NCBI GenBank assembly: GCA_038087875.1
Contig: JAXLNO010001064.1
Span: 124,001 to 188,000, forward strand
DNA: 64,000 bases
Reading direction: 5' to 3'
Source: Malacoraja senta
Taxonomy: Eukaryota
Position 1 is the first letter of the stretch; the number at the start of each line of letters is the position of its first letter. A program made the translations under genes and the position numbers. Below, piece after piece: positions 9,087-64,000 of the stretch. The notes below the pieces were generated by a model. The model saw only the letters and a list, made by a program, of their open reading frames with translations, was not told where the DNA came from and searched no databases.

Positions 9087-9164
9087 AAATTAATGTGACC
9101 CCAGTACCTGAGATGAGCCGTGTTGCTGAATATATGTCTGTGAGTAGGAAGACAACGCAAGAAG
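9087..9164 (+). CDS. Copy A cytoplasmic exon 1 (Tyr motif AEYMSV)
   Basis: ttattttccAG acceptor, GTAAAT donor; 78 nt, phase 1-1, open. EINVTPVPEMSRVAEYMSVSRKTTQE. Confidence 0.65.
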
Positions 9165-11546: not shown

Positions 11547-11603
11547 ATACAGAGGAAGGTATTCATTATGGATCCATCTCCTTCCAGCCAAAAGCATCTG
11601 GTG
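11547..11603 (+). CDS. Copy A cytoplasmic exon 2 with canonical ITIM IHYGSI
   Basis: Long pyrimidine tract then ccacAG, GTAAAC donor; 57 nt, phase 1-1. DTEEGIHYGSISFQPKASG fits I/V/L/S-x-Y-x-x-I/L/V. Confidence 0.75.
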
Positions 11604-13005: not shown

Positions 13006-13049
13006 GCAGCAGCGATAATACACTGTCCTCCAATCAAGCATCAGGCACT
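13006..13049 (+). CDS. Copy A cytoplasmic exon 3
   Basis: tttattacAG acceptor, GTAAGT donor; 44 nt, phase 1-0. GSSDNTLSSNQASGT. Confidence 0.7.
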
Positions 13050-13181: not shown

Positions 13182-13241
13182 AACCTTGTTTCTTCAAAGG
13201 AAGATGAGTCTGTCATCTATGCTGAAACAGTAAAAACATAA
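13182..13241 (+). CDS. Copy A terminal coding exon with ITIM-like SVIYAETV
   Basis: tttctctttcAG acceptor; phase 0 matches the previous donor. NLVSSKEDESVIYAETVKT-TAA. Confidence 0.75.
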   Translation, partial: NLVSSKEDESVIYAETVKT

Positions 13242-17735: not shown

Positions 17736-20700
17736 CCCAACCCCCCCTCTCTGTAAATAATCAATAAATCACCACATAAACTGCACGTCTGGGGGAATAA
17801 ACCTGGTAAATCTGGGGTAAATAATGTTATAACACACAGGGGAGCGGAATAAACCCGGTAAATCTGGGGTAAATAATGTTATAAACACACAGGGGAGTGG
17901 AATAAACCCGGTAAAACTGGGGTAAATAATGTTATAAACACACAGGGGAACAAAGTAAACCCTGTCTGGGGTAAAACTAAGGTAAAGTAAATAAGTTTAT
18001 TGGCCAAGTATTCACATACAAGGAATTTGCCTTGGTGCTCTGCCCACAAGCAACAACATGGCATACAGTGACAGTAAATAATGTTATAATACAGTAAATA
18101 ATATTAGAAACACACAGGGGAGCGGAATAAACCCGGTCTGGGGTAAAACTGGGGTAAATAATGTTATAAACACACAGGGGAACAAAATACACAAACAGCC
18201 CCACAGCCATCAGGATATTGAACTCAACTCAAACAAAACTCTAAATATTAATAGCCCATTATCAGTTTATTTGCACTTTATCTGTTTTCTTTATACATGT
18301 GTGTATATATTTATACAATGGTATATGGACACACTGATCTGTTCTGTATTCATGCCGTCTATATTCTTTTGTGCTGAAGCAAAGCAAGAATTTCATTGTC
18401 CTATCTGGGACACACGACAATAAACTATCTTGAATCTTGAATAAACCCGGTCTGGGGTAAAACTGAGGTAAATAATGTTATAAACACACAGGTGAGCAAA
18501 TTAAACCCGGTCTGGGGTAAAACGGGGTAAATAATGTTCTAAAGACACAGGGGAGCAGAATAAACTGGGCTGTGGAGTCGTTCCCAAAACATCCGACCCC
18601 GACCCCTCGGTAAAATAATTCTAAATCTGCTGTGATGACATTACACAAGTTGGCATTTCATAAGAACCACATGAATCCTCAGGCTGCCTTTTAAACCCAT
18701 GTCCATAAAGTTTTGAGTCTAACGGTTGTATCTGTGCTATTGTGGCTTTTAAAAATGTTTATTCTTGAAATAAAAACCATAATTCATTATGCTAAAAGAA
18801 AACAAAATGGTAGAAAGGACCATGACAAAATTAAAGTTCCATTGAATTAAGTAAAAATTATAAAAGCATTACTCCAAAATGTATTAAACTAAGGCCACAG
18901 GTATGAGCTAAATGGCTAAATTATGACAAAAAAAACATCATGTGCATAGAAACCATAGAAAATAGGTGCAGGAGGAGGCCATTCGGCCCTTCGAGCCAGC
19001 ACCGCCATTCATTGTGATCATGGCTGATCGTCCCCTATCAATAACCCGTGCCTGCCTTCTCCACATATCCCTTGACTCCACTAGCCCCTAGAGCTCTATC
19101 TAACTCTCTCTTAAATCCATCCAGTGATTTGGCCTCCACTGCCCTCTGTGTCAGGGAATTCCATAAATTCACAACTCTCTGGGTGAAAACTTTTTTTCTC
19201 ACCTCAGTCTTAAATGACCTCCCCTTTCTTCTAAGACTGTGGCCCCTGGTTCTGGACTCGCCCAACATTGGGAACATGTTTCCTGCATCTAGCTTGTCCA
19301 GTCCTTTTATAATTTTATATGTTTCCATAAGATACCCCCTCATCCTTCTACACTCCAGTGAATACAAGCCTAGTCTTTTCAATCTTTCCTCATATGACAG
19401 TCCCGGCATCCCAGGAATCAATCTCGTGAACCTACGCTGCACTGCCTGAATCACAAGGATGTCCTTCCTCAAATTAGGAGACCAAAACTGTACACAATAC
19501 TCCAGATGTGGTCTCACCAGAGACCTATACAACTGCAGAAGAACCTCTTTACACCTATACTGAAATCCACTCGTTATGAAGGCCAACATTCCATTAGCTT
19601 TCTTCACTGCCTGCTGTACCTGCACGCCAACTTTCAGTGACCGGTGTACAAGGACACCCAGGTCTCGCTGCACCTCCCCCTTACCTAACCTAACCCCATT
19701 GAGATAATAATCTGCCCCTTGTTTTTGCCGCCAAAGTGGATAACCTCACATTTATCTATATTATACTGCATCTGCCCACTCAATCAACCTGTCCAAGTCA
19801 CCCTCCAACCTCCTAACATCCTCTTCACAGTTCACACTGCCACCCAGCTTTGTGTCATCTGCAATAGTGCAATAGAAATTAAAAGTAAATGCCTAGGTAG
19901 TTAAGTTTGCTACAAAAGTACATACCTAAAATGTATTAATAAAAGTCTGAGGAACAGAATTGCTTCTCTCAGAGAGAGAGAGAGAGAAAGTGGAGGGAGG
20001 AGTGGAGTGAGAGGCTGGAGGTGGAAAGGGGGTGAAGTGAGTAGCGGGGGGAAACAGGCAGCAAAGGGAGGGGGGAGGATTCAAGGGGGAGTGGGTTTGG
20101 TGCCGTGGGGGATGAATGGGGGGAAGGGAACTGGGGGGGAGATAGAGGGGTCAGGTGAGCCAAGGAAGGGGGTAGGGAACCAGGTGGGGGTGGGTTCAAA
20201 TTGTTTGGGGGTGGGGAGGAGGGGGGAGGGAGCAAAGGGGGATAAGGAACAGGAGGCGGCAGGTATAAGGGGCAGGGAGCCACAGGAAGGAGGTCACATT
20301 GTTTGGGGGTGGGGAGGGTGTTGCAGTTTAGGAAGTCAAACCAGGGCAGGGTCTTCACTGTGAATGGCGGGGCGCTGGGGGAATGTGTGGAGCCGAGGGA
20401 TCTAGGAGGGCAAGTACGAGTTGGGTCGAAGGGCCTCTTTCCAACGCTGTATCACTCAGTGAATCTATGACAAAGTGCTGGAGTAATTCAGCGGGTCAGG
20501 CAGCATCTGTGGAGAAGATAAACACAAAGGGCTGGAGTAACTCAGCGGGTCAGGCAGCATCTGTGGAGAGAAGGAAACAAAGGGCTGGAGTAACTCAGCG
20601 GGTCAGGCAGCATCTGTGGAGAGAAGGAATGGGTGACATTTTTGGCTCGAGACCCTTCTTTGGTTTAGTTTAGTTTAGAGATGCAGCGCAGGAGAACCCC

Positions 20701-22404
20701 CCTCTCTGTAAATAATCAATAAATCACCACATAAAACTGCACGTCTGGGGGAATAAACCCAGTAAATCTGGGGTTAATAATGTTATAAACCCAGTAAAAC
20801 TGGGGTAAAGTAACTAAGTTTATTGGCCAAGTATTCACATGCAAGGAATCTTGCCTTGGTTGCTTCCGCCCACAAGTAACAACATGACATACAGTGACAG
20901 TTAATAATGTTATAATACAGTAATTAATATTAGAAACACACATAGGGGAGCGGAATAAACCCCGTCTGGGGTAAAAACCTGGGTAAATAATGTTATAAAC
21001 GCACAGGGAGCGGAATAAACTGGGCTGTGGAGTCGTTCCCAAAACATCCGACCCCGACCCCTCGATAAAATAAATCTAAATCTGCTGTGATGACTTTACA
21101 CAAGTTGGCATTTCATAAGAACCACATGAATCCTCAGGCTGCCTTTTAAACCCATGTCCATAAAGTTTTGAGTCTAACGGTTGTATCTGTGCTATTGTGG
21201 TTTTTTTTTAATGTTTATTCTTGAAATAAAAACCATAATTCATTTATGCTAAAAGAAAAACAAAATGGTAGAAAGGACCATGACAAAATTAAAGTTCCAT
21301 TGAATTAAGTAAAAATTATAAAAGCATTACTCCAAAATGTATTAAACTAAGGCCACAGGTATGAAGCTAAATGGTTAAATTATGACAAAAAAAACATGTG
21401 CATAGAAACCATAGAAAATAGGTGCAGGAGGAGGCCATTCGGCCCTTCGAGCCAGCACCGCCATTCATTGTGATCATGACTGATCGTCCCCCAATCAATA
21501 ACCCGTGCCTGCCTTCTCCACATATCCCTTGACTCTACTAGACCCAAGAGCTCTATCTAACCTCTCTCTTAAATCCATCCAGTGATTTGGCCTCCACTGC
21601 CCCCTGTGGCAGGGAATTCCATAAATTCACAACTCACTGGATGAATTTTTTTTTTCCTCACCTCAGTCTTAAATGACCTCCTCTTTATTCTAAGACTGTG
21701 GCCCTGGTTCTGGACTCGTCCAACATTGGGAACATTTTTCCTGCATCTAGCTTGTCCAGTCCTTCTTTATAATTTTATGTTTCCATAAGATTCCCCCTCA
21801 TCCTTCTAAACTCCAGTGAATACAAGCCTAGTCTTTTCAATCTTTCCTCATATGACAGTCCCGCCATACCAGGGATCAATCTCGTGAACCTACGCTGCAC
21901 TGCCTGAATCACAAGGATGTCCTTCCTCAAATTAGGAGACCAAAAACTATACACAATACTCCAGATGTGGTCTCACCAGAGACCTATACAACTGCAGAAG
22001 AACCTCTTTACACCTATACTGAAATCCTCTCGTTATGAAGGCCAACATTCCATTAGCTTTCTTCACTGCCTGCTGTATCTGCACGCCAACTTTCAGTGAC
22101 CGGTGTACAAGGACACCCAGGTTTCGCTGCACCTCCCCTTACCTAACCTAACCCCATTGATATAATAATCTGCCCCCTTGTTTGCCACCAAGTGGCTCCC
22201 TCCCCTTTCTCTATATTATACTGCATCTGCCATGTTTCCCCCGCTACTCACTCAACCTTCACGTCCTTCCATCCTCCTAACAGCTTCCCACGTCCACTGC
22301 CTCCTCCAGCTTTGTGCTCCTCTGCACTCTCGCTGCACTGAGAATAAAGTCAATGCCTAGGTCCGTCAGTAGCTTTTATTAATACTTTTAGGTATGTACT
22401 TTTG
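17736..22404 (+). repeat. Direct duplication (about 17736-19935 vs 20696-22404) containing an about 53-bp satellite-like repeat and a CR1; third partial copy about 40570-41125
   Basis: Shared AATAATGTTATAAACACACAGGGG units, unique spacer and CR1. The second copy degrades towards the N gap. Confidence 0.85.
18948..19860 (-). mobile_element. CR1 LINE 3-prime region (copy at about 21403-22260)
   Basis: ORF 19038-19673 QRDLGVLV...[13 protein letters not shown]...RTRGHSL; (CTATGTTT)-type tail. Confidence 0.9.
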
Positions 22405-22762
22405 NNNNNNNNNNNNNNNNNNNNNNNNNNNNNNNNNNNNNNNNNNNNNNNNNNNNNNNNNNNNNNNNNNNNNNNNNNNNNNNNNNNNNNNNNNNNNNNN
22501 NNNNNNNNNNNNNNNNNNNNNNNNNNNNNNNNNNNNNNNNNNNNNNNNNNNNNNNNNNNNNNNNNNNNNNNNNNNNNNNNNNNNNNNNNNNNNNNNNNNN
22601 NNNNGTTTACCAGCTTGTTGACCTTCTGTGTTCCCCTCCTGCAGGGTTTCGGAGCCGTTGCTGTGGACGGAGAGACAGGCCATTTAGGGCGGCCAGGGTG
22701 CCGGTGAGCCCCCCCCCCCATCTGCTCGGTGTGTGGGCTGAGCTTCGAGGGGCTGAGATTCG

Positions 22763-24409
22763 ATGGGGGACCACATGACGGGGCACAACAAGGAGAAGCG
22801 TTATGAGTGTGACGTGTGTGGCAAGGCCTGGCGGTGCCCGAGCCGGCTGGACATCCACCGGCGGGTGCACATGGGAGAACGCCCCTTCAACGGCTCGGAG
22901 TGCGACAAGAGCTTCAAGATGGCGAAACAGCTGAAGATGCACCAGCGGGTTCACATTGGCGAGAAGCCCTATTGCTGCGGCACCTGCGGCAAGAACTTTG
23001 CCCGGTTGTCGGGGCTGAGGAACCACCGGCGGGTGCACAGCAGTGAGCGGCCCTTCACCTGCTCCAACTGCGGCAAAGGCTTCAAGTCGTCGTTGGACCT
23101 GAAGGTGCACAGGCGTGTGCACACCGGGGAGCGGCCCCACACCTGCGCCCAGTGCGGCAAGGGTTTCACCCTCTCCGGCAGACTGCTGAGGCACCAGCGC
23201 ACCCACACCGGTGAGCGCCCCTACACCTGCGTCCAGTGTGGCAAGGGCTTCACCCAGACCAGTCACCTGCTGTCACACCAGCGCACCCACACCGGCGAGC
23301 GCCCCTTCACCTGCGCCCAGTGCGGCAAGGGTTTCGCCTTCTCCGGCACCCTGCTGAGGCACCAGCGCACCCACACCGGCGAGCGCCCCTACACCTGCGT
23401 CCAGTGCGGCAAGGGTTTCACCAGATCCAGCAGCCTGCGGTCCCACCAGCGCACCCACACCGGCGAGCGTCCCTACACCTGCGTCCAGTGCGGCAAGGGT
23501 TTCACCAGCTCCAGCAGCCTGCAGTCCCACCAGCGCACTCACACCGGCGAGCGTCCCTACACCTGCAGCTACTGCGGCAAGGGCTTCATCTGCTCCAGCC
23601 ACCTGCTGTCCCACCAGCGCACCCACACCGGCGAGCGTCCCTACACCTGCAGCTACTGCGACAAGGGCTTCATCTGGTCCAGCCACCTGCTGTCCCACCA
23701 GCGCACCCACACCGGCGAGCGCCCCTTCTCCTGCGCCCAGTGCGGCAAGGGTTTCGCCCTCTCCGGCACCCTGCTGAAGCACCAGCGCACCCACACCGGC
23801 GAGCGCCCCTACACCTGCGTCCAGTGCGGCAAGGGTTTCATCTGCTCCAGCAGCCTGCGGTCCCACCAGCGCACCCACACCGGCGAGCGTCCCTACACCT
23901 GCAGCTACTGCGACAAGGGCTTCATCTGCTCCAGCCACCTGCTGTCCCACCAGCGCACCCACACCGGCGAGCGCCCCTTCACCTGCGCCCAGTGCGGCAA
24001 GGGTTTCGCCCTCTCCGGCACCCTGCTGAGGCACCAGCGCACCCACACCGGCGAGCACCCCTACACCTGCGTCCAGTGCGGCAAGGGTTTCACCAGCTCC
24101 AGCAGCCTGCGGTCCCACCAGCGCACCCACACCGGCAAGCACCCATACACCTGCGCCCAATGCGGCAAGGGCTTCGCCAGCTCCACCGGACTGCTGTGCC
24201 ACCAGCGGGTGCACACCGGCGACCGTCCCGTCCCCAGCCCGGTGTGTGGAGAGCGCTTTACCATGGCCTCCCACGCCCTGTCTCACCAGTGCGTGCACAC
24301 CAGTGGCCAGCCCTACGACTGCCCGTACTGCGGTGAGGAGTTTGACAGCTCGCGGGGGTTGCGGCAGCACCGGCGGACCCACGCCGGCGAGCAGCTGCTC
24401 CCACTGTGA
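22763..24409 (+). CDS. Tandem C2H2 zinc-finger protein, 19 finger units (17 intact), no KRAB/SCAN domain visible; about 3 further fingers out of frame to 24623
   Basis: 548-aa ORF with CxxC-x12-HxxxH units and TGERPY linkers; acceptor cctcctgcAG at 22643-22644. Confidence 0.93.
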
Positions 24410-32216: not shown

Positions 32217-32440
32217 GTATTTTTGCTATCTATCATTTCATTTATTACTCACACCAGCAGAGTTGTGCACAAATGGTTCACATTAATAATGTCAATCTGA
32301 GGGGCAACGTTTCCACACAGAGGGTGGTGGGTGTATGGAATGAGCTGCTGGAGGAGGTAGTTGAGGCTGGGACTATCACAACGTTTAAGAGACACTTGGA
32401 TAGGACAGGTTTGGAGGGACATGGGCCAAACGCGGGCAGG

Positions 32441-33120
32441 TGGGACTAGTGTAGATGGGGCATGTTGGTCGGGGTGGGACTAGTGTAGATGGGGCATGTT
32501 GGTCGGGGTGGGACTAGTGTAGATAGGGCATGTTGGTCAGGGTGGGACTAGTGTAGATGGGGCATGTTGGTCGGGGTGGGACTAGTGTAGATGGGGCATG
32601 TTGGTCGGGGTGGGACTAGTGGATTTGGGGCATGTTGGTCGGGGTGGGACTAGTGTAGATGGGGCATGTTGGTCGGGGTGGGACTAGTGTAGATGGGGCA
32701 TGTTGGTCGGGGTGGGACTAGTGTAGATGGGGCATGTTGGTCAGGGTGGGACTAGTGTAGATGGGGCATGTTGGTCGGGGTGGGACTAGTGTAGATGGGG
32801 CATGTTGGTCGGGGTGGGACTAGTGGAGTTGGGGCATGTTGGTCGGGGTGGGACTAGTGTAGATGGGGCATGTTGGTTGGGGTGGGACTAGTGTAGATGG
32901 GGCATGTTGGTCGGGGTGGGACTAGTGTAGATGGGGCATGTTGGTCGGGGTGGGACTAGTGTAGATGGGGCATGTTGGTCGGCGTGGGACTGGTGTAGAT
33001 GTGGCATGTTGGTCGGGGTGGGACTAGTGTAGATGGGGCATGTTGGTCGGGGTGGGACTAGTGTAGATGGGGCATGTTGGTCGGGGTGGGACTAGTGTAG
33101 ATGGGGCGTGTTGGTCGGTG
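32441..33120 (+). repeat. 34-bp minisatellite, 20 units, amplified from a CR1 3-prime UTR
   Basis: Unit TGGGACTAGTGTAGATGGGGCATGTTGGTCGGGG; CR1 tail sequence continues on both sides. Confidence 0.93.
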
Positions 33121-33156
33121 TGGGCAAGTTTGGCCGAAGGAAGGGCCTGTTTCCAT

Positions 33157-34090
33157 GCAAGGTCATGACCCCGAGGGACATTGGTGTCAAGGGTCACGGT
33201 GGAGGGAATGTTCTGACCTATTCTAATGTCTGAGAAGTGAATAGTGATGATTTGTTAATTCATCATGGCTGAAGCAGGTGGGCTCACTTCTGACTAGACT
33301 TTACTGTGGACATTTAAACAGGAAAAGTAAACTTTCTTTGTTAACAATGAATGACCCAGAGAAAGGAGAATGTTACTCTTGGAAGTTCATAGAGTCATCT
33401 TAGAGTTCATAGAGTTCTATAGACTGGATAGACTCGGCTTGTACTCGCTGGAATTTAGAAGATTGAGGGGGGATCTTATAGAAACTTACAACATTCTTAA
33501 GGGGTTGGACAGGCTAGATGCAGGATGATTGTTCCTGATGTTGGGGAAATCCAGAACAAGGGGTCACAGTTTAAGGATAAATGGGAAATCTTTTAGGACC
33601 GAGATATGAAAAAAAATTTGTACACAGAGAGTGGTGAATCTGTTGAATTCTCTGCCACAGAAGGTAGTTGAGGCCAGTTCATTGGCTATATTTAAGAGGG
33701 AGTTAGATGTGGCCCTTGTGGCTAAAGGGATCAGGGGTTATGGAGAGAAAGCAGGTACAGGATACTGAGTTGGATGATCAGCCATGATCATATTGAATGG
33801 CGGTGCAGGCTCGAAGGGCCGAATGGCCTACCCCTGCACCTATTTCCTATGTTTCTATGAACTTCCAAGAGTAACATTCTCCTTTCTCTGGGTCATTCAT
33901 TGTTAATAAAGAAAGTTTACTTTTCCTGTTTAAATGTCCACAGTAAAGTCTAGTCAGAAGTGAGCCCACCTGCTTCAGCCAGGATGAATTAACAAATCAT
34001 CACTATTCACTTCTCAGACGTTAGAATTGTTCAGAACATTCCCACCACCGTGACCCTTGACACCAATGTCCCTCGGGGTCATGACCTTGC
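33157..34090. repeat. 237-bp inverted repeat (33157-33393 / 33854-34090) enclosing a CR1 3-prime fragment
   Basis: The arms are reverse complements with only a few mismatches; the spacer is CR1 (about 33420-33853). Confidence 0.92.
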
Positions 34091-42588: not shown

Positions 42589-43488
42589 ACAATAGACAAT
42601 AGGTGCAGGAGGAGGCCATTCGGCCCTTCGATCCAGCACCGCCATTCAATGTGATCATGGCTGATCATTCCCAATCAGTACCCCGTTTATGCCTTCTCCC
42701 CATGTCCCCAGACTCCGCTATCTTTAAGAGTCCTCTCTCTTGAAAGTATCCAGAGAACCTGCCTCCACCGCCTTCTGAGGCAGAGAATTCCACAGAGTCA
42801 CAACTCTGTGAGAAAAAGTGATTCATCGTCTCCGTTCTAAATGGCTTATTCTTAAACAGTAGACCCTGGTTCTGGTTCCCCCAACATCGGTGTAGTGGCA
42901 GATTTTTCTTATCTTTTGAGAAACGAGTTCTCTAGCCGCTATTGGATGAGAATGGATAAGGGGAATATCTTCGATACCCATGCCAGCTTCCTCAGAGACC
43001 TTCAGAGCGTCTTCACTCGTAAAGCTTCAACACACAGTCTTTTGTTGAATAAATGCTTTATTGTTGATGGTAAACAGCAAGATACATCCAAGTTTCTTCC
43101 GACTCGTTACTGCAATCTTCCTTCAATTCCAACTTGCAACTTTCAACATTACAAAACTCCTCGTGTCTCCGTTACATTGACATGGTCGAAGGATTGACCT
43201 TCTCCATCGTCTCTCCAAACTAATCTAAAAACTAGACTTCTGTGTAAGCATCTAAGCTCCAAACACGCCTAAAACACATCATAAATCCAACCCACAATAC
43301 AACGGGCAGTCTAAAATGTAAAGGCACATGCCATCATCAGTGACATGCAAAACAGGCCAAATGGCCACTACATACCGGCTCCTAATTGTTCCGAGTATCT
43401 AACGAGGCAATTACTAATAAACATTTAAAAAGGTGGCCATAAAGGCTTAACATATATCAAAAGCTAAAGGTGAGGGAATAAAACCCTG

Positions 43489-43563
43489 TGGCTCCTCGTC
43501 GGGAAATTGAACCCCGGTCTAACGCGTGACAGGCAGGGATACTAAACACGATACTAACGAGGA
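43489..43563 (-). tRNA. tRNA-Asp(GTC) pseudogene with genomic CCA, inside the BEL 3-prime UTR
   Basis: TCCTCGTTAGTATCGTGTTTAGTATCCCTGCCTGTCACGCGTTAGACCGGGGTTCAATTTCCCGACGAGGAG+CCA: perfect 7-bp acceptor stem, GTC anticodon; D-loop and anticodon stem damaged. Confidence 0.85.
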
Positions 43564-44744
43564 AAAAATAGCATGCACTATATATCCGCAATCATGGCTC
43601 TTCATCGACTCTTCCATCTTCACCTTCGCCTTCTAGAAGCAAACACAACTTGGTTATTGGTCTTATAAAAACATTGTTTTTTGTTTTAAGACGTACCATA
43701 TGCACCAAACCCTGAACGTCAGGCATGATTTCTAGTATTCTTCCCATCAACCAAGAACCTCGTGATGCTGCAGAGTCAGCCTTGATAACCCAATATTTGT
43801 TACCAAGTTGGGATAACATATAATTTCTTCCTCCATGTCCAACTTGTTCATGAATATGTCGTAAAAATAATGTCGTTATGTAAAAGTCCTTTGAGAGAAT
43901 GATAGGACGTTTAGTTTTTACGGGCATTGCCAATTTGTTTAGGTGACCAAATCATCCACAGAAGACCTTCCTCCCAGACTGGGTCGAGCTTGTACAATTG
44001 ACTGTTTCTTTTTACCCCCTGTCTTCCAGCTTCCAATGTTAATATTTCTTCTTTGTATTTCTGTCTTTGACAGAAAGAGATGATCGCATTTTCCGCCTTG
44101 AGGACATCATCAAGACGTAAATCCTGTACGCCATATGAAGCTTCAAAAACTTGCATATGGCCTTCAATCTCTCTTTTCCGTTTATCAGGATTCTCTCCCA
44201 GGATACTCTCTGTAATTTGTCTCCTTTCCCGAGCCGCCAGCAATAATCTTGTTTTTATTTTAAGAAACCAGGCTACCGAAGTTATCAATTTATTCCATGA
44301 TGAAAAGTAGGTAATTAAATTGTTCACGGTGTCATATGAGTCTTTAGCAATCACATTCACCGAAATGTTTTGTTTTATTTCCGGATCATTTACAGATATT
44401 TCAAATCCGAGTTCAAGCTTTGGCCATTCTCTGCTTGGTTCACAAAGAAACTTGGGGCCCATTGATCCATCTCCTGTTATTTAGAAAGCAATTTGCTGTT
44501 AGTCCTCTAGAAGATTCGTCCAAAGGATTTTCTTTGGTGCTAACATATCTCCATTGAGAAACATGAGTAGTTCCCATTACAAAGGAGACTCTATTTGCTC
44601 CAAATGTCATAAAGCGTTTGTTTTCATTATTGAAGTATTTCAGAACCGTAGTGCTATCGATCGAGAAGATAGATTCTTCCATTTGAAATTGTAGTTCCTT
44701 TTGCAACATTATGTCAATTTTAACAGCTAAGACTGCTGCTGTTA

Positions 44745-45212: not shown

Positions 45213-47170
45213 TTAAGTTCCATTCTGGGAATCGTCATTTGTTTCAGTGGTGCCACTCAGGCTTTTCCCATTCAGAATGCAACATGCACTCTTTTGTTAA
45301 CATTTTGCAGTCTTAAATATGAAACAGCCACTTTCACTGTCATCTGAAAAATGATGCAATTGTGAACTTCTGATCTTACCAAAGTTTTTAGGCTTTATGC
45401 ACCGATCCACCTTCAACTTTGAAATTTTATGGAGGTCCGTTAACCATTCTGGCCAACGGTGCGAGGATGTTTGAGTTATACTCTCATCTCATCCAAGTTT
45501 TTCCTTACAAAGATTTTGTAAAATTAACTTGGCTGGCAGTGTAAATGGTGCAAGAAATCCCAAAGGGTCGTATACTGAGCCAATCACAGAAAAGATACCC
45601 CTTCTTGTACATGGTCGCTCCTGAATCGACAACTAAACTGAAACACATCCGTTTCCACGCACCAGTGCCCTTTCCATTGGCAAATTGTCTTTAACTAAAT
45701 CCAACTCCTTGGTTTCTTCAGCTCTGTCATCTGGTGGAATGGTTTCCAATACAACACGATTGTTGCTGATCCACTTGGAAAGTACAAATCCTCCCTTATT
45801 GTAGAGAGAGGTCAGGTGTTTTACCATTTGAATTGCTTTCTGCTCAGTAGATATGGATTTTAGGCAGTCGTCCACGTAAAAATTATTTTTCAAAGTGGAA
45901 ATTACCACCTCTGGGAAATAATCTTTATTATCCTCTGTGGTCTTCCTTAAAGCGAAATTCGCACAACTTGGAGATGACACTGCTCCAAAGAGATGTACTT
46001 TCATCCGGTAATCAACAAGAGCTTGCTGCACATCCCCTTCATGCCACAATAAGAATCGCAGGTAATCAATATGTTCACCAGCTACTTTCACTTGATGAAA
46101 CATCGATCTGATGTCAGCCATTAAAGCAATCGGTTCTTGCCTAAATTTGATGAGAACTCCAATGAGTGAGTTGGTAAGGTCTGGACCTTGCAGTAGTTCA
46201 CTGTTAAGCGATGTACCTTTAAAGACTGTAGCACAGTCAAAGACCACCCTCAATGTCCCTTTCTAGTATTTAACCCCCCTGCCGGAGGTTCCCTTCGCTT
46301 TACTCTTCTGTCCCAATCTCTGGGACTAGTATTTAACACCCCTGCCGGAGGTTCCCTTCGATTTAATCTTCTGACCCACTCTCTGGGACTAGTATTTAAC
46401 CCCCCTGCCAGAGGTTCCCTTCGACTTATTGTAACGGCAGATTTTTCTTATCTTTTGAGAAACGTATTCTCTAGCCGCTATTTGGATGAGAATGGATAAG
46501 GGGAATATCTTCGATACGCATGCCGGCTTCCTCAGAGACTGTCAAAGCTTCTTCACTCATGAAGCTTCAACACAGTCTTTTGTTGAATAAATGCTTTATT
46601 GTTGATGGTAAACAGCAAGATACATCCACGTTTCTTCCGACTCGTTACTGCAATCTTCCTTCAATTCCAACTTGCAACTTTAAACATTACAAAACTCCTC
46701 GTGTCTCCGTAACATTGACATGGTCGAAGGATTGTCCTTCTCCATCGTCTCTCCAAACTAATCTAAAAACTAGACTTCTGCGCAAGGATCTAAGCTCCAA
46801 ACACGCTTAAAAACACGTCATAAATCCCACCCACAATACAACGGGCAGTCTAGAATTTAAAGGCACGTGCCATCATCAATGACATGCAAAACAGGCCAAA
46901 TGGCCACTACACCTGACATCTGCTGAATTTCTTCAAAGTTGCCTTAAAGGCGAGATTCAACTTCTGTGTTTCTTTTTGATGGTGGAGTTGTCTGTCTTTG
47001 ATTGCCCAAACCTGTTCAGAGAGAGGGCACAATTTAAATTGTTTTCACCTTTTATAAAGTCAAAGAGTCATAGAGTCATACAGCACAGAATCATGTCCTT
47101 TGGCTCAACTAGTCTATACCATCCAAGTTGCTCCATCCAAGCTAGTCCCATGTGCCTGCAATTGACCCAT

Positions 47171-54063: not shown

Positions 54064-54676
54064 CTGGAGAGTGGACAAATGCATCTTTGCACTGCAGAGT
54101 TTTCACAAGTCAAGATGACAAGTAAAGGAGCAACTGAATTTATAATTGTACATACAGTTAATATATTCAATGTGTAATTTTATATTTCTAATGATCAGTT
54201 ATTGAAATGGTTTATTTTTTTAATGGAAAAAAATGTTGATTTATATAAATATAAGGGAAGCTTTAAGAACTGAGTATTCCATGTGTCAGTGACCTTGATG
54301 AACTGTTGTACTAGCCCGATACCCGTCTGATCAGTTTGTTCAACAACACAGAATAAACGCTCAGGCACAACCCCAAATTTGAACACACAGTTGAGCCTAA
54401 CACTCTGTTGTCATGTGGGATTGCTGCAGCATTGGCCTCACCAGATTAAAGATTATTTGTTAAACTGAGGCACCTTCTGGCCTCTTGGGACACAATAGAT
54501 GTTGGAATGTGAATCACCAAAGTGCAGTGGAGATACCTTTGTCTCCTGGTTTCCTGGCCAATATTCATGCCTCAGTAAATAGGAACATGTTGAGGGCAAA
54601 TTGGAGACCATATTTTCTACATGACTACAATAGCTATACTTCAACTTCTGGCATGTTTATTTGATAATGGTTTACA

Positions 54677-54985
54677 TAGAAACATAGAAACATAAAAAAT
54701 AGGTGCAGGAGAAGGCCATTCGGCCCTTCGAGCCTGCACCTCCATTCAATATGATCATGGCTGATCATCCAACTCGGTATCCTGTACCTGCCTTCTCTCC
54801 ATACCCCCTGATCCCTTTAGCCACAAGGGCTAACCCCTTAAGAATTTTGTAAGTTTCTATAAGTCCCCCCTCAATCTTCTAAATTCTAGCGAGTACAAGC
54901 CGAGTCGATCCAGTCTTTCTTCATATGAAAGTCCTGACATCCCAGGAATCAGTCTGGTGAACCTTCTCTGTACTCCCTCTAGAGA
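54677..54985 (-). mobile_element. CR1 fragment present only in duplication arm 2
   Basis: Absent at the homologous site near 8663 in arm 1; flanked by TTTACA on both sides. Confidence 0.8.
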
Positions 54986-55280
54986 TTTACACAGGGGATG
55001 GTGACACAATCACCACATGGTCAGATCATTGCAGAACAGCACCTGAAATCATACAGCAGACTCCTCATGGCAATGCAGGTAGACAGGACAATCCACATTG
55101 CATAAATAATGCTTCAATTGACCACAAAAAGTCTGAAATCAATTTCTCAACAACATAAGCACAAACGGATACTTTTCTTATCCAAAATATATTGTTCTTT
55201 TCTCCTTGTAACAAAGATAACATTGTCATTGATAATTTGGGGAATCTGTGCTGCATTAAGGATGTCTTCATGTACTTTAC

Positions 55281-55385
55281 CTGTAGGCTTGTGCTTTCTT
55301 TGACAGAACTCCACTGCCAGTATAATGACGATGAGAACAGCCAGACCTCCGATAATTACAACAAATCTGAGGAAAGTATAATTCC
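55281..55385 (-). CDS. Copy B transmembrane exon with Arg and Glu
   Basis: Same splice sites as A; 105 nt. NYTFLRFVVIIGGLAVLIVIILAVEFCQRKHKPT. Confidence 0.88.
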
Positions 55386-56223
55386 CTGTCAAAATAATAA
55401 ACACAGAGTTCACATTTGTAGAATAAATGGACATCATGCAAAAGCTCCCCCAAAGACCAGGCATTAACCACACTGACTAATTTAGATCAGAAGTCTTGAG
55501 TTTAACTTGTGATCCAGATTCACTGAGACACAAGGTACTGCAGATGAGAGTTTACCAATAAAAGACACAAAGTGTTGGAGAAACTCAGCAGGTTAGGCAG
55601 GTGACATTTCGGGTCGCAGCCCTTTAGCCTGAAGTAGGGTCAAGACCCAAAACGTCACCTATCCATGTTCTCCAGAGATTCCGCCTGACCCGTTGAGTTA
55701 CTCCAGCACATTGTGTCTTTTTTTCCAGATTAATTGACCTTACTCAGAAAGATTAGAGAGCCACAACTTGCCTCAGTAGCCATCAGTTAGAGACTGTAAA
55801 CATTCACACACGTTTCTATTTCTTCGTTACAATCAGCTGACATTTCTCAGGCAGGAGATGGGAGCTGATGGTTGGTTGATAAAGTAGCTGATTCAGCTGT
55901 GATACTTCCCACTGTACAGTGGACAAATGTCTATCATAGTCTAAGCCTGGAACAATGGTTGAATGAGCACTGCTGACAACAGAGTGGATATTGCCCTCCA
56001 GCTTCAATCCTCTCTAACCAGGAGCACAAGAATGGTAAACGTTAGAAATACTCAGCCGTTTGAGCAGTATCTGTGGAAAGGGAAAGAAGTAAGTTCATGT
56101 TTTATGATGGAAAAAACGTTGGCAGATTCAAAGAAAGGATCTTTGACAATAGACAATAGGTGCAGGAGTAGGCCATTCAGCCCCTCGAGCCAGCACCTAC
56201 ATTTAATGCGATCATGGCTGGAC

Positions 56224-56999
56224 TCAAGATTCAAGATTCAAGAGAGTTTATTGTCATGTGTCCCAGTTAGGACAATGAAATTCTTGCTTTGCTTCAGCAC
56301 AACAGAATATAGACGGCATGAATACAGAACAGATCAGTGTGTCCATATACCATTGTATAAATATATACACACATGAATAAATAAAACAGATAAAGTGCAA
56401 TAAACAGATAATGGGCTATTAATGTTCAGAGTTTTGTTTGAGTTGAGTTTCATAGCCTGATGACTGTGGGGAAGTAGCTATTCCTGAACCTGGATGTTGC
56501 AGTCTTCAGGCTCCTGTACCTTCTACCTGAAGGTAGCGGGGAGATGAGTGTGTGGCTAGGATGATGTGGGTCCTTAATGATGCTGCCAGCCTTTTTGAGG
56601 CAGCGACTGCGATAGATCCCCTCGATGGTGGGGAGGTCAGAGCCGATGATGGACTGGGCAGTGATAACAACTTTTTGTAGTCTTTTTCCCTCCTGGGCGC
56701 TCAAGTTGCCGAACCAAGCGACGATGCAACCGGTCAGCTTGCTCTCTACTGTGCACCTGTAAAAGTTCGAGAGAGTCCTCCTTGACATACCAACTCTCCG
56801 TAATCTTCTCAGGAATTAGAGGCGCTGATGTGCTTTCTTTATAATAGCATCAGTGTTCTCGGACCAGGAGAGACCTTCAGAGATGTGCACGCCCAGGAAT
56901 TTGAAGCTCTTGACCATTTCCACCATCAACCCGTTGATATAAACGGGACTGTGGGTCCCCATCCTACCCCTTCCAAAGTCCACAATCAGGTCCTTGGTT
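56224..56999 (-). mobile_element. Rex1/Babar-type LINE fragment present only in arm 2
   Basis: Arm 1 reads GAGGAACAA|GTCCAGCC uninterrupted near 7437; LPSGRRYRSLKTATSRFRNSYFP and (TCTTGAA)n tail. Confidence 0.88.
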
Positions 57000-59816
57000 T
57001 TGTTCCTCTTTCACAGTTGTTCTTCTTTCACAGTTCCTATCTGTCCTGATTATTATCATTATTTTTCATTCGGATTTTCAACTCCTAAAATTAATTTTGG
57101 TCTTCAAGTAATAAAACTGTACTGTGCATGTGACCATTGCATACTGATGTCAATGAGGTTGAACACATTATTATTGCAATCCTAATGAGCACATCTTCAT
57201 GTGTTTTTAGTGTAAAATTGGAGATGGTTGATCCATGCATTAATTCCACACACCAACTAATCTATTCACTCACTGATTGATATCTCCTGCCCTTTAAGGA
57301 CAACTCAACACCCAAAAGCATCAGTCTGCAATGAGGCCAAAGGATGGAGAGGCTGGTGTGCGCGACCCTTGTAAAATAAAGTTCAACTTCAGTTCTGCTC
57401 CATAGTGAGACTGTGCTACATGAGCGTACATGGGGAGGCTTCTGCTCAGCCGGGAGCACAGATTTCCAAATGAGGAGGTGGGGACACCACAGTGGGAGTG
57501 GGTGTGGGTGGGGGTGGCCTTTCCCTTGGTGCAGCGGCTGACGGAGCAGGGCTTTACTGGCACTGAGGCACAGGCAGAGGACAACCAAAGTCTTCATTCC
57601 TCGGTGGACTCTCAGCCGACTGTAGTCAGAGCCCTGTTGTCCTCTCCCAGGGTGAGACTGCTGCTCGCCAGGAGTAAGGATTAATAACACCAACCTATAG
57701 CACACAGTGACCATCGGGGAGCAGGTTGCTGTGTTCAGTCAAATAATCACATCCGATGGTGCATTGAATCAGTTGAATCGGCAAATCAAACTGTAAACAT
57801 GTAACAAAGAGATGACACAATGAAGGTGGCACGGTGGGGCAGCGGGAGCGTTGCTGCCTTACAGTTAATGCAGCGCCGGAGATCTGGGCTCGGTGCTGTC
57901 TGTACGGAGTTTGTACTTTCTCCCCGGGACCTGCATGGGTTTTCTCCGAGATCCTCGGTTTCCTTCCACATTCCAAAGACATACAGGTTTGTAGGTTAAT
58001 TGGCTTGGTAAATGTAAGAATTGTCCCTAGTGGGTGTAGGATAGTGTTAGTATGCGGGGATCGCTGGTTGGTGAGGACCCGGTGGGCTGAAGGGCCTGTT
58101 TCCGCGCTGTATCTCTAAACTAAACTAAACAGTAAACATGGTTGGTATAATTGAGATTCTTTTTATGGCTGTTCTCTGTCCAGTTATTACCATGGCACAC
58201 TGAAGAGAGAGTTTGAAGACAAGAGTCAATAATGCTCTTTCATCACATCAATGGCATCATTGTTCATTTATGCATCATTTATTCAGACTGAACAGAATGG
58301 ATTGTGGAAGGATGCTCCCTTCAGTGGAAAGGCTGAGCACAAAAGGTTATAGGTTTAAAATAAAGGGGAAAACATTTTAGAATGACTTGAGGAAAATCTT
58401 TTTGGGCAGCAGGTAGTTGGAGTCTGAGGTGTACTGTCTGCATCAGTTAGGGAGCTGGGTTCTATCGTGGCTTTCCAGAGAGAATTGGACAAATATATAG
58501 TGATGAAAAAGCTGCAATGTAATGGCAAAAGGAGAGGGGGTAGAATTAGCGAGTTGCTCTGGATGAGAGTTAGCATGGATATGATGGGTCAAATGGCCAC
58601 CTTCTGTGCTACAACCATTCCACAATTCTATGATTGGATGATGTCATTATCTGTGAGGAATTAAAGTGTTCGTGTTGGGACATTGATACTTTCCACTTTG
58701 TGCTTCACTGACTCTTCATTGATCTATGTGTGGTGGAGATTGTTTCTTTGTGCCTGGATGTTTACAGGATCTTCCTCTGTTAGGGATCAGTGCTTTGCCT
58801 TCTGTCAGCATTGTACAACCTGTCTTTCACCGAGGCTTGGGGCCACATGAAGGGCAGGGATTAATGGATGGGTGGGATTGGGAGGAAAGGGCGTGTTTAG
58901 TTTAGTTTAGAGATACAGCATGGAAACAGGCCCTTCGGCTCGCCGAGTCCGCACCAACCAGCGATTCCCACAGACTAACACTATCCTACACACACCACGG
59001 ACAACATACAATTTAAACCAAGCCTATTACCCTACAGACTTGTACATCTTTGGAATTTGGGAGAAATCCGGAAATCCTGGAGAAAACCCACACAGGGCAC
59101 GGGATGAAGGTACAAACTCCATACAGACAGCACCTGTAGTCAGGATTGAACCCGGGTCCCCGGCGCTGTAAGGCAGCAACCCTACCACTGAGCCACCATG
59201 GTCAGACAAGGTGAAGACATCAGTATTCCCTCCCCCACATCTTCTGTTCTCACATGGCAGCCTTTGGTGAAGTTACTGTGGATGCTTCAACCACTGTAAT
59301 GTTTTACAGCATTAGAACAGGGGAAAGAAACTTGTACAACTATTTTTAAGATGATTTTCACTACTTTTGTGATCTTTAAGTGGCACAGTTTGGGTGTTAT
59401 AGCAAAGATCTTCCACCAAGCTGCCCACCTTACTATACTGACCTCTGACAAAAAGGTTCATAGTGACACACTGGTTTTCATACTACTGGACCAGTTTTCA
59501 TACCTCTGGAGACACTTATTAACAAGGACAGACATTGATGATGAATTTCCCGATCACCTTCAATGAGATGGCCAAGACAGGTCTTGGTCAGTGGTCTGCC
59601 AGCAGTAGTGATCCATGTGCTCCCATGTGCTTCAGAGACCTGGACTACTTACAATAGAAGTGACCTTATAGGCATGGACAAGAGGTTTGAAGGAAATGTC
59701 TATGATTGAGCTCTACTTGCAATAAGACATGGAATGTTAAAAGTTATCCAAAAAGAATAGCAATGTGACAAGAACTCTGTGTCGAGATAACGAAGAGCAG
59801 AAGCTAAGAAACTTAC

Positions 59817-60078
59817 TGTTCACCTGCAGATTATATGGAATGAAAACCTTGGCTGTACTTTGATGAAACAAACCACATGTCCATTTCCTTCTTACTCCAT
59901 CAGCTATTGCTATAATAAGCTGCAAAGAATTGTCCTCCTGCTGTGTTTGCATGAGATTTTTCTCCTCAACAACTTTGCCTTCATCATTGATCCAAACCAG
60001 ACTCAGTGACATGAGACACAGAGCAGGTCAGGGTAATGTTTCTTCCCTCAGTCACTGCGCCAGATGGTTCAGTTGTGA
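59817..60078 (-). pseudogene. Copy B exon, Ig domain D4 with an 8-nt deletion
   Basis: 262 nt (270 minus 8). TTCAATGA of copy A is missing near 60003, giving ...TCSVSHVTESGLDQ-TGA (59984-59986). The downstream frame keeps LVWINDE...RRKWTC. Confidence 0.88.
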
Positions 60079-60812
60079 CTGTGGAAAGAAGAAAATCGTA
60101 AAACAATGAATTTTGTCTCGATTGTGTTGTGTTTTTCTCAGTACTTTGACACCAATATATGGCGTTCTAAGTGTGAAAAATTATATTACACAACAAGAGT
60201 TAGAGGCATAGTCATACAGCATGAAACAATTCGGTCCATTCAGCCCAACTCATCCATGCCGCCCAAGATGCTCCATCTAAAATATGTTCCCTCATTTGGC
60301 CCATATCCCTCTGCACCTTTCCCATCCATGTACCTCTCCAAGTGTCACTTGCATAATCATTCACAACAGTTTTGAACTAATTATACAAAGAGCAACCAAT
60401 GCCCACATCATTGTCTCTGGCCACAGTTTTGGCCACAACACTCATCCAGGTAAATATTAATCGATAAATTACACCAAATACACTCAGTTTTAAGCCTCCA
60501 GTGAGCCTTCAAAAATTAGGATGGGTCGTTTGGGGTCAAAGAAACTTGGGGAATGTGTTAAGAGAACTTGAATGATTTTTAAAATATTTTTGATGGAAGC
60601 TCATTTGCACCTATGTGAATCACATTTCATCATATTCCCTCTCTTATGTATAAAAAATGTGTTTTCAGCAAAATAAATGCAAATAACATTTGATGTGCTT
60701 CCCAATAATGTTGGTTTAGGGCAGATTTTGGGTTCAGCAAAATACAAATAAGTTGAAGAGGAAGCTCTGGAGGTAAAATAATTCTTGAAAGTAGTAACAT
60801 CCAGTCTCCTAC

Positions 60813-61151
60813 CTGTAACTGTGATTAGGTCAATGGTCACATATATGTTTGATCCTGTGGAACATGTGTAAACTCCAGCATCTGCAAACTGCACGGGGAC
60901 AATACTTACATGGAAATTCTTGCCATTCACATTTCCCTCTGTGGTTTCCAGTCGATTCCCAAAGTAGCTCCTGTCGACATGTATCGGCTCAGACCTGTGA
61001 GAAGAAGCTATTTCCTTCTCTTGATTCTGGAAACGTGGTGATCTCCAAGTCCATTTGGTTTCACTGAGCTCAGGAGAAGCTTCACAAATCAGGTCGAGTT
61101 CACTGTGATCTGTGACTGAGCGATAAACTGTGTACGTCTTGTTATGTAAAT
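60813..61151 (-). CDS. Copy B exon, Ig domain D3 (V-set)
   Basis: Homolog of 3264-3602; 339 nt, open. LDLICEAS...DAGVYTC (ORF 60601-61176). Confidence 0.92.
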
Positions 61152-62788
61152 CTGCAAGAGAGGGACAGGGAACCAAGAATTAGATTTCCACGCACGCCGA
61201 GATACAATGTTGTGAGTTTCCACAGGGACAAACCCCCGGCTCTGGGATGTCAGCTGGGACCCCTGGTTCTGAACTCGCCCAACATGGGGAACATTTTTCC
61301 TGCATCTAGCCTGACCAATCCCTTAATAATTTTATACGTTTCTATAAGATTCCCTCTCATCCTAAATTTCAGTGAATATAAACCCAGTCGATCCATTCTT
61401 TCATCATATGTCAGTCCGCCATTCCAGGAATTAACCTGGTGAACCTATGCTGCACTCCCTCGATAGCAAGAATGTCCTTTCTCAAACTAGGAGACCAAAA
61501 CTGCACACCATACTCCAGGTGTGGTCTCACCAGGGCCCCGTACAACTGCAGTACGATCTCTTTGCTCCTATACTCAAATCATCTCGCTATGAAGGCCAAC
61601 ATGCCATTTGCTTTCTCCATTGCCTGATGTATCTGCATGCTTACTTCAGCACGATGTCCAAGTCACCCTAATGATAAAGCTGGTGTCCTGTTCACATTGC
61701 AACAACCTGAAGCTCAGTGCTCTTAAGACAGTGGAATTGATTGTAGACTCAATCCTTCCCTCCTGATTGTAGATCTCCCCATCCCCGCCCCCAACTCATC
61801 TTCAACAACACCACAGTCACAACTGTGGAGTCATTTAATTTCTTCGGAATCATCATCTCCAGCGACCTTAAATGGGAGCCCACCATCGACTCCACAGTCA
61901 AAAAGTCCCAACAGAGGATGTACTTCCTGCGGCAGCTGAGGAAATACAACCTGCCACAGGCAATGATGGTCCAATTCTACACGGCCATCATAGAGTCTGT
62001 CCTCATCTTCTCCATCATGCTCTGGTTTGGCTCAGTCACCAAGCACGACACCTGGAGGCTGCAGCAAATCGTCCGATCAGCTGAGAAGGTTATTGGCTGC
62101 AACCTTCCCTCCATTGATGAACTGTACACTGCAAGGGCCAGGAAGCGAGCGGGCAAGATCATCTCTGACCCCTCTCACCCTGGCCACAAACTCTTTGAAT
62201 CACTTCCCTCTGGCAGGTGAGTCCTGACTGTCAAAGCTGCCACAGCCAGACATAAAAACAACTTCTTCCCACGAGCCGTAGCTCTACTCAACAGCCAAAT
62301 GTCGGTAGCCTCTTTTTACTCCGGTACTTTATTTTCACATGTTTAAATTATAATGTTTTATTTTTAATTGTCTGTTTTATATCGTGTTTTTACCATATGC
62401 GAGCAAAGCACTGTCAAATTGCTTGTATATGATTACGTGGACAATAAAATGTTATTCTGATTCTGATATTTCCTCTGCATTTATACTTGAATTAGTTCAT
62501 ATTTTCCTGTTCTGTTATACACTGAAAACTAGATGTTATTTCCATCACTGGATATTATCCCCTTTGATTCATGCAGGTGAACTGAAATGAATCCCTTGGT
62601 TCTCCTGTGTTGCTCCATCAATCTTAGTGCCACCATTTTATATTTACACCATGTCCCAGGGTAAAGGCAATGTCCACATCCTGCAGTGTGGAAGCCCACG
62701 GGTGGAGTCAGTGCTCACTATACAACATGTGGAACAGTTTGATATCAAGAACTATTTAATACCTGCTGCAAGGCAGCTTTGGACTCAC

Positions 62789-63061
62789 CCTGATCCACTT
62801 CAACATTGGTGTCTCCAGTGAGAACAATGGAGGTATTTTCCTGCACTTCCCATGTGTACAGATTGGGATTTCCTGCTTCAACGTGTTGGATTATCAGATA
62901 GATGGCGTTATTCAGACGGATCTGATCAGTGTTGTTCCTCCTGTTCTGCTGAGATGAGCCTCTTGTTTTCCAGTGAAGACTGATGGTATCTGGGAGTCTG
63001 GAGATGGTACAGCTGAGGGTGATGTCACTGCCCATCACTGGCCTCGGTGAGTCGGCCTCAA
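62789..63061 (-). CDS. Copy B exon, Ig domain D2
   Basis: Reverse-complement homolog of 1348-1620 with the same splice sites; 273 nt, open (ORF 62745-63077). The B D1 exon falls beyond the window end. Confidence 0.88.
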
Positions 63062-63185
63062 CTGTGAAAACAGACACATGTGGTTCAGTTCACCAACAGC
63101 TTTCTGAACTACTGTGGGCAGAATTGTCTTTTTCCTGCAGACAGACAGTCGGCTGAATGTTGAGCTGCCGTGCTCAGTGATGTCA

Positions 63186-63515
63186 TCAACACTTCCTGGT
63201 AGTGACCACCTGTCCCCCTCGCCCCCCTCGTCTCCGACATCAACACTTCCTGGTAGTGACCACCTGTCCCCCCCGCCCCCTCGTCACCCACATCAACACT
63301 TCCTGGTAGTGACCACCTGTCCCCCTCGTCTCCCACATCAACACTTCCTGGTAGTGACCACCTGTCCCCCTCGCCCCCCTCGTCTCCGACATCAACACTT
63401 CCTGGTAGTGACCACCTGTCCCCCTCGCCCCCTCGTCTCCCACATCAACACTTCCAGGTAGTGACCACCTGTCCCCCTCGCCCCCTCGTCTCCCACATCA
63501 ACGCTTCCAGGTAGG
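63186..63515 (-). repeat. About 53-bp G-rich minisatellite, about 6 units, in intron D1-D2 of copy B (about 1.3 units in copy A at 1156-1230)
   Basis: Unit GGTGGTCACTACCAGGAAGTGTTGATGTGGGAGACGAGGGGGGCGAGGGGGACA on the minus strand. Confidence 0.9.
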
Positions 63516-64000
63516 GATGTTTTTAGTATAGTAGAAACACAGAACTGCATATGCTGGTTAATATATAAAAGGACATAAAGTGCAGGAGTAATTCAGCAGG
63601 TCTGGTAATATGAATATCACTGCCCCTTAATTGGTACACGTGACAATAAAATACCTTTGAACTCTAGAGAACATAGATAGGTGACGTTTCTGGTTGAGAC
63701 CCTTCTTCAGTGATTATATTTCTTGGATGTCTTTAACTGCGATTTTATGGGAGTGAATAAAATCACGAGGCATATCTATAGTAAACGCACATGGTCTATT
63801 TTCCAGGGTTGGGGAATCAAAAACTAGGTAGTACATGTTTAAGGTGAGAGGGGCAGATTTGATATACCCCTTAATATTAGGGGCAGTTTTTTGACAAAAA
63901 GTGTGGTACATGAACATACTTTATGGAAAGATCGAGCAGAGGAAGTGTTTGATGCAGGTACAGTATTTAAAGGGCATTTAAACAGGTGTATGGAAAAAAA

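Follow-up and report, generated by a model that had tools for sequence, protein, structure and literature searches.

Two tail-to-tail inverted copies, A and B, of one four-domain (V-like, C, V, C) Ig receptor gene lie in the 64,000-nt stretch of Malacoraja senta DNA analysed here (the window), and the membrane anchor of copy B begins with an arginine-bearing cluster of differences which, on comparison with Amblyraja radiata (thorny skate) paralogues, is a pre-existing variant (R-type) that did not originate in B. The explanation we favour, at somewhat better than even probability, is that A is an inhibitory gene, that B was given the R-type patch by gene conversion or kept it from an old dimorphism and possibly became an activating or decoy partner, and that the pair was probably inactivated recently. 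Judged by sequence, A and B represent the familiar inhibitory-to-activating switch of paired receptors, here in an as yet undescribed cartilaginous-fish family.

In mammals, birds, frogs and bony fish, much is known of paired activating and inhibitory receptors; to our knowledge there are hardly any descriptions of them from cartilaginous fish, which are the oldest lineage to have an immune system of the human type. The A/B locus would catch the step by which an activating form is made, namely acquisition of an arginine patch common to paralogues together with loss of the ITIM tail.

Gene pair and receptor family

The two copies occupy a large inverted repeat with arms of about 8 kb that are 94-96% identical, a global alignment giving 287 mismatches in 8047 aligned columns (3.57%). 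All exons of A and B have canonical ag/gt splice sites and fitting phases. The arms and their exons are as follows.

668-8827, plus strand: arm A; its end at 8827 is an old deletion junction, the NQRQ exon having been removed
203-547, plus strand: D1 exon of A, V-like without cysteines; in B this exon falls outside the window, past its end
1348-1620, plus strand: D2 Ig exon of A
3264-3602, plus strand: D3 V-set exon of A (Pfam E 1.4e-7)
4409-4677, plus strand: D4 Ig exon of A, 1 base missing between 4461 and 4462
8277-8384, plus strand: TM (anchor) exon of A, 108 nt, uncharged, (K)NYTFIYIIVGIIGSLAVLIVIILAVVWCQRKRKPT
54510-63999, minus strand: arm B, with private insertions at 56225-57016 and 54680-54985
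62789-63061, minus strand: D2 Ig exon of B
60813-61151, minus strand: D3 V-set exon of B
59817-60078, minus strand: D4 Ig exon of B, 8 bases missing between 60006 and 60005
55281-55385, minus strand: TM (anchor) exon of B, 105 nt, (R)NYTFLRFVVIIGGLAVLIVIILAVEFCQRKHKPT, canonical ag/gt, phase 1-1

The point 8827/54510 was considered as the end of the duplication and rejected, as it is the junction of an old deletion in A which the A. radiata loci L005 and L006 have in the same form, while B runs on below 54510 like its Rhinoraja orthologue, remaining colinear through several insertions to 46910. The insertions private to arm B measure 792 and 306 nt, and within the larger (56225-57016, minus strand) is a fragment of a LINE-type ORF (..FLRRLRRVGMSRRTLSNFYRCTVESKLTGCIVAWFGN..). 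The intron preceding D2 has a short unit once or twice in A (1154-1229, plus strand) and as a tandem array in B (63184-63538, minus strand), with copies about 53 nt apart.

Between the two genes lies a GC-rich stretch with two long tandem arrays, one of a 34-nt unit (32303-33248, about 28 copies, 96% alike) and one of an 84-nt unit (22855-24330, about 17 copies, 75-80% alike). Two direct copies of a sequence of about 1.1 kb (18551-19679 and 21006-22138, 95-98% identical, 2.46 kb apart) precede an assembly gap at 22405-22604, and another gap (13714-14001) comes directly after gene A.

When 1.84 billion representatives were searched by phmmer with the D3 domain, 66 proteins were returned, and the ten best-matching clusters comprised sharks, rays, skates and a chimaera only, nearly all annotated as “uncharacterized protein”. 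Pfam gave generic Ig models and no family-specific match, and the family profile matched PDB entries weakly (PD-L1 6e-9, LAG-3 1.5e-6, CEACAM1 1.6e-5, pIgR 1.8e-5). Since these matches are weak or generic, the family is left unnamed; on these searches it is a V-C-V-C Ig family restricted, among the ten best-matching clusters, to cartilaginous fish. The Leucoraja protein LOC129701493 matches the window exons at 77-92% identity exon by exon (tblastn), and both arms align colinearly, at 87-91% identity, with the orthologous loci of Leucoraja erinacea and Rhinoraja longicauda.

Members of the family are ordered as D1 (V-like, no cysteines), D2, D3 (V-set), D4, anchor and tail, and have one of two signalling ends. 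One consists of an uncharged anchor (..GSLALLL..C.RK.K) and ITIM-bearing tail exons (“NQRQ..”, “INETPVPE..EY.SV”, “D.E.IHYGSISF” and “..SVIYAQI”); the anchor exon in the window is of this kind. The other is an anchor with a mid-helix Lys (IW..GYLLVKL..) and a short tail.

Divergence of the transmembrane exon

A preliminary description, made from the letters alone, had stated that the flanking introns of A and B match closely while the TM exon differs in clusters, B being 3 nt shorter with several multi-base codon changes. This was borne out, and the translations are as it gave them. The 354 nt directly upstream of the TM exon are 99% identical between A and B and the 218 nt that overlap and follow it 95%. 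The TM exon itself has 14 mismatches and the 3-nt gap, the maximum of all 105-nt windows along the arms (mean 3.7), and so does not sit at intron background in the sliding-window comparison which the description had proposed as a check; the divergence peak is statistically clear. The differences are grouped near the two ends of the helix, one cluster outer and one inner, and 34 identical bases separate the clusters. Next in divergence along the arms is an intronic stretch (6580-6684, plus strand, against 57887-57783, minus strand; 13 mismatches in 105 nt) inside a SINE-like repeat.

When the orthologues of Rhinoraja and Leucoraja served as outgroups, nine of the changes in the TM exon were polarised as derived in B, again the maximum of the arm (mean 1.39 per 105 nt), and three as derived in A, including Phe to Tyr. 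The changes derived in B are mostly non-synonymous. Private to B are the 3-nt deletion (FL-R for FIIR) and Val to Glu (GTG to GAG). The GGA/GTA, TGG/TTC and CGC/CAC differences form a mosaic, each being common to one or the other outgroup.

An R-type patch of 42-58 nt

A scan of the family's anchors identified A. radiata proteins with NYTFIIR(F/S)VVIIGGLALLLVIVLAVVW(Y/C)QRR(H/R)KPT anchors, and four such R-type loci, L005-L008 (proteins LOC116966225, LOC116969960, LOC116969496 and LOC116969867), were compared with B at the DNA level. The comparison delimits the following feature.

55339-55393, minus strand: R-type patch in and just before the TM exon of B; minimum extent 55385-55347, maximum about 55393-55339

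The patch measures 42-58 nt at the start of the anchor exon, and the Arg codon (AGA) lies within 55346-55370. B agrees with L005-L008 at 10 of the 12 sites where A and B differ within A 8277-8318, and 25 of 25 consecutive bases, including the Arg codon, are identical between B and the R-type loci (TCAGATTTGTTGTAATTATCGGAGG), a string present in at least four A. radiata loci. Over the 44 columns of the patch, B differs from the R-type sequence by three substitutions and one 3-nt gap.

Beyond the patch, where the rest of the exon and both introns are A-like, B groups with A and has no affinity to the R-type loci. When A, B, L005 (R-type) and L002 (a non-R A. radiata paralogue) are compared as a quartet, the informative sites run from 11 that join A with B, through six that join B with the R-type locus (8298-8318), to 10 that again join A with B. 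The Arg segment is thus a phylogenetically discordant island in an otherwise homogenised pair, and in this respect the preliminary reading is supported. L002 and L005 differ from each other in the same patch, on a common background of their own. The ectodomain of B is of the Leucoraja LOC129701493 type and those of the R-type A. radiata genes belong to another subfamily; synonymous changes are present inside the patch.

Given the 25-nt match to an existing R-type exon, gene conversion or a long-kept dimorphism would explain the patch, and not a burst of selected point mutations. The A-like surroundings would be the signature of short-tract gene conversion, or of the kept dimorphism. Conversion into B is favoured because the Leucoraja and Rhinoraja orthologues colinear with B are non-R and because its ectodomain is of another subfamily than that of the R-type genes. 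Of the suggestion that selection had created or preserved the anchor of B, creation therefore fails on the match to the R-type loci, and an imported or retained patch stands; with synonymous changes inside the patch, selection is unnecessary as an explanation.

Window searches found no donor, the 25-nt R string being present in B only and the conserved exon core in A and B only. R-type anchors beyond A. radiata were not found in a word-based search limited to proteins of similar length, which proves little. Orthologues in other rays, the comparison advised in the preliminary description, are non-R in Leucoraja and Rhinoraja; the R-type genes of A. radiata are paralogues. About 300 extra nt after the anchor exon in B, L005 and L006 were considered as a lineage marker and rejected, since the inserts are 38% alike, lie at different sites and derive from different TEs.

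Upstream of the anchor exon, three R-type loci contain the first tail exon a second time, in diverged form (ETNVTPVPDMSHVTEYT..; L005 12261-12402, L006 18716-18857, L008 14490-14631), which suggests that unequal recombination set an anchor-plus-tail module behind an older gene body. L005 and L006 may be alleles or haplotigs, as they are 99.4% alike in an intronic insert, and L005-L007, which share one deletion, may be very recent copies or haplotigs, so that the number of independent events among them is small.

Arginine anchors and loss of the inhibitory tail

The tail of A comprises four exons with canonical splice sites and matching phases, and a first tail exon is recognisable in B.

9087-9164, plus strand: tail exon of A, (E)INVTPVPEMSRVAEYMSVSRKTTQE
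11547-11603, plus strand: tail exon of A, DTEEGIHYGSISFQPKASG, with the ITIM IHYGSI
13006-13049, plus strand: tail exon of A, GSSDNTLSSNQASGT
13182-13241, plus strand: last coding exon of A, NLVSSKEDESVIYAETVKT, with the ITIM-like VIYAET, ending ..SVIYAETVKT (stop 13239-13241)
46913-47011, minus strand: first tail exon of B (“NQRQ” exon), GLGNQRQTTPPSKRNTEVESRL and then TAA; the TAA (46946-46944) replaces a Tyr codon of the orthologues

With its uncharged anchor and ITIM tail exons, A reads as an inhibitory-type gene. The NQRQ exon of B lies 8.3 kb downstream of the anchor exon across a predicted intron, beside an LTR element, and no ITIM exon follows it on the minus strand of the window. Because of the TAA and the lack of a further tail exon on that strand, the predicted product of B would end 29 residues past the helix, without an ITIM. 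Two 243-nt direct repeats (43032-43274 and 46570-46812, 97% identical, 3.5 kb apart) look like the LTRs of a BEL/Pao element at 43373-43600, and this element sits where the colinearity of B with the Rhinoraja orthologue stops.

In the R-type loci the tail is damaged in other ways. L005, L006 and L007 have a common 2-nt deletion in the first tail exon, which leads to ...EYMSE and a stop ahead of still recognisable ITIM exons, and in L008 no first tail exon was found within 19 kb downstream. In each of the four non-R genes examined, namely A, L002, Leucoraja L001 and Rhinoraja L004, the ITIM tail exons are intact. The Arg anchor thus goes together with loss of the inhibitory tail in B and the R-type A. 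radiata paralogues, which is circumstantial evidence that the Arg has a meaning, and the loss came about by at least two, possibly three, different lesions. The Ig and anchor exons of the R-type loci are open, and coding gene models of this type exist at four or more places; an mRNA of these loci that skipped the damaged tail exon would stay in frame and regain the ITIMs.

In another A. radiata protein, P0114 (LOC116978409), an Arg stands where Gly-Ser is usual, farther into the anchor (YTYIIIIRCLAVLLIIIVGVVVC); D4 is missing and the annotated tail is short. Here a charged anchor may have arisen from the inhibitory type a second time, independently.

State of the pair

Several features expected of paired receptors are present, namely similar ectodomains, an ITIM in A, and in B a basic helix residue and a predicted short tail without ITIM. 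The copies are not both intact: A has a 1-nt deletion in the first Cys codon of D4 (4461/4462) and B an 8-nt deletion in D4 (60006/60005), flanked by a TGA..TGA repeat, each of which shifts the frame and is derived relative to Leucoraja and Rhinoraja. That two independent lesions should affect the same exon in both copies is odd.

Among 852 Ig-exon sites, 10 synonymous and 16 non-synonymous changes separate A from B (pN/pS 0.46), which suggests that constraint acted for some of the period since the two copies parted. On that view the D4 lesions would be young, or errors of the consensus, or avoided by transcripts that skip D4 and so stay in frame; some related gene models do lack D4. Frameshifts in both D4 exons make the present-day function of the pair doubtful, and A and B were probably inactivated recently or are expressed only with D4 skipped.

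Alternative explanations

The simplest reading of the patch would be a short gene-conversion tract from an R-type paralogue into the anchor exon of B; within the same favoured explanation, an old R/non-R dimorphism may have been kept while its surroundings were homogenised. The patch puts the Arg in the first turn of the membrane helix, and we infer that an R-type anchor assembles through this Arg with the paired aspartates of an ITAM adaptor of the zeta/FcR-gamma type. In this way an inhibitory receptor may have become an activating or decoy partner, as in the KIR, LILR, PIR and CEACAM pairs. A bolder version, which we offer tentatively and consider doubtful, makes the Arg cassette of about 50 nt a movable switch: micro gene conversion would carry it between subfamilies and, with truncation of the tail, it would yield partners of zeta-type adaptors, a second activating solution evolved independently beside the old Lys anchor.

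B may instead always have been R-type, as a member of an old lineage kept by selection, which corresponds to the “preserved” alternative of the preliminary description. Repeated conversion with A would then have made the ectodomain, the introns and the anchor exon's 3' half uniform, and tracts that erased the Arg would have been selected against. The patch is indeed about 25% diverged from the non-R sequence between flanks that differ by 1-5%, the same dimorphism occurs on two different backgrounds, and B retains the ancestral intron and NQRQ exon lost in A, L005 and L006, so that it is not a plain recent copy of A. The cost is at least two tracts that end within about 10-30 nt of the patch on either side, and both the non-R state of the B-colinear Leucoraja and Rhinoraja orthologues and the different ectodomain subfamily of the other R-type genes tell against such a history, which we consider unlikely. 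The same low probability is given to a neutral origin, by which B is a dying, truncated duplicate, the patch a chance ectopic conversion and the Arg merely tolerated, the R-type loci decaying as well. The D4 frameshifts in both copies, the stop in the NQRQ exon, the synonymous changes within the patch, the Glu private to B and a boundary K or H in ITIM-bearing genes would all fit it; the open Ig and TM exons and coding models of R-type genes at four or more places, the joint occurrence of Arg and tail loss by different lesions, and an Ig-exon pN/pS below 1 would not.

New adaptive substitutions in B after the duplication could account for the highest density of B-derived, mostly non-synonymous changes along the arm. 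They are nevertheless very improbable, as the 25-nt string is found in four A. radiata loci and 10 identical changes arising independently are not credible. Least probable of all is an assembly artefact, a collapsed or chimeric consensus built from mixed reads of paralogues. In its favour are the multi-copy nature of the family, two N gaps in the window and D4 indels that may be errors of the consensus; against this, the patch is only 42-58 nt long with a 3-nt deletion and two private changes of its own, and the arms differ by many private substitutions and by the insertions of 792 and 306 nt.

Position of the arginine and a possible adaptor

The anchor of B (FLRFVVIIGG...) has the Arg at position 3 and the Glu at position 22 of a 24-residue apolar stretch without other charge. 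With 18 uncharged residues between them, a membrane-spanning helix must include at least one of the two. Prediction of the TM boundaries, another proposed check, placed the Arg inside the membrane in the longer windows: it is position 3 of the best hydrophobic windows of 21-23 residues and lies just outside the best one of 17-19 residues. A basic residue near the outer boundary is also found in ITIM-bearing relatives (YTFKFT in Rhinoraja, FKHTN in sharks, thus K or H). This weighs against an activating role of the Arg in B, as does the separate activating anchor, of Lys type, that the family already possesses.

The preliminary description had read an R...E pattern with FcR-gamma as the partner. 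Its Arg part holds, the position being that of zeta/gamma-coupled receptors and common to the R-type loci, and its Glu part does not, as the Glu near the inner end is a single-base change private to B without comparative support. In TCR-alpha, CD89 and NKp46, it is an Arg near the top of the TM domain that contacts the paired aspartates of zeta-zeta or gamma-gamma; a central Lys serves DAP12 and CD3 dimers (PMC13107469). FcR-gamma was not found in cartilaginous fish in a 2014 survey (PMC4016189), and cd247 is expressed in T cells of the bamboo shark (PMC11372145), which together make a zeta-like partner the better guess. The partner of B, if there is one, is more likely to be zeta-like than FcR-gamma, which is thus no longer the likeliest candidate.

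If the Arg form does pair with a zeta-like chain, the rule of a top-of-helix Arg and an aspartate pair would extend to innate-type receptors at the root of the jawed vertebrates, and would hold even where FcR-gamma was not found. If the movable-switch reading is true, Arg-Asp-Asp assembly would occur outside the T-cell receptor in cartilaginous fish.

Comparison with known receptor systems

Within the family, the R-type A. radiata paralogues resemble B in the start of the anchor (RF/RS-VVIIGG) and in predicted products without ITIM. They differ from it in belonging to another ectodomain subfamily, in the 3' half of the anchor exon, in having FIIR where B has FL-R (B minus 3 nt), and in a tail cut by a 2-nt deletion in another exon. 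Lys-type members (Rhinoraja, Pristis and Pristiophorus proteins) have the same ectodomain family as A and B and a short tail without ITIM. Their anchor is encoded by an unrelated exon, old and common to sharks and rays, with the mid-helix Lys at the DAP12/CD3-type position, whereas the R-type anchor derives from the inhibitory anchor exon.

More distant Ig receptors were also compared. CD4/LAG-3, B7 (PD-L1) and CEACAM share with the skate family the V-C-V-C order and the cysteine-less first domain, with scores at the generic-Ig level. An identity as CD4/LAG-3, suggested by that order and an “ELFGIK” domain ending, was rejected, as PDB and Pfam gave generic Ig only and the tail motifs that mark these receptors, Cx(C/H) or (F/Y)xxL(D/E) (PMC10768021), are absent from the tails of the family. 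Kinship with CEACAM, based on the tail motif and the cysteine-less first domain, is left open and was not adopted, the profile match reaching only E 1e-5. The modular domain immune-type receptors of skates (MDIR) have CD300/TREM/pIgR-like domains (PMC3031540), and their name was on none of 43 homologues of the present family.

In CD89, NKp46, NKp30 and TCR-alpha, which form the “RDD” assembly, the Arg lies 2-3 residues into the apolar stretch, as in B, a likeness of position only. CD89, LILRA2 and NKp46 have an acidic residue directly after the helix; compared with such zeta/FcR-gamma-coupled receptors, the Glu is not conserved among the skate genes.

The closest parallel is with KIR2DL/2DS, LILRB/LILRA, PIR-B/PIR-A and CEACAM1/CEACAM3, whose partners have near-identical ectodomains, as do A and B. 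In the mammalian and frog pairs, one partner has an ITIM tail and the other a basic anchor residue and a truncated tail, and the same is predicted for A and B. Such paired genes in mammals and frogs occur in opposite orientation with conversion between them (PMC5112662; PMC2213385), and the opposite orientation favours intrachromosomal conversion (PMC5112662). Compared with these pairs, the skate Ig family is unrelated and both window copies are frameshifted. The less usual feature is the tract exchanged between paralogues, which in the mammalian and frog pairs is a ligand-binding exon and here would be the charged anchor patch itself, making this locus a clear illustration of gene conversion at the signalling end of a receptor and not at its ligand-binding end.
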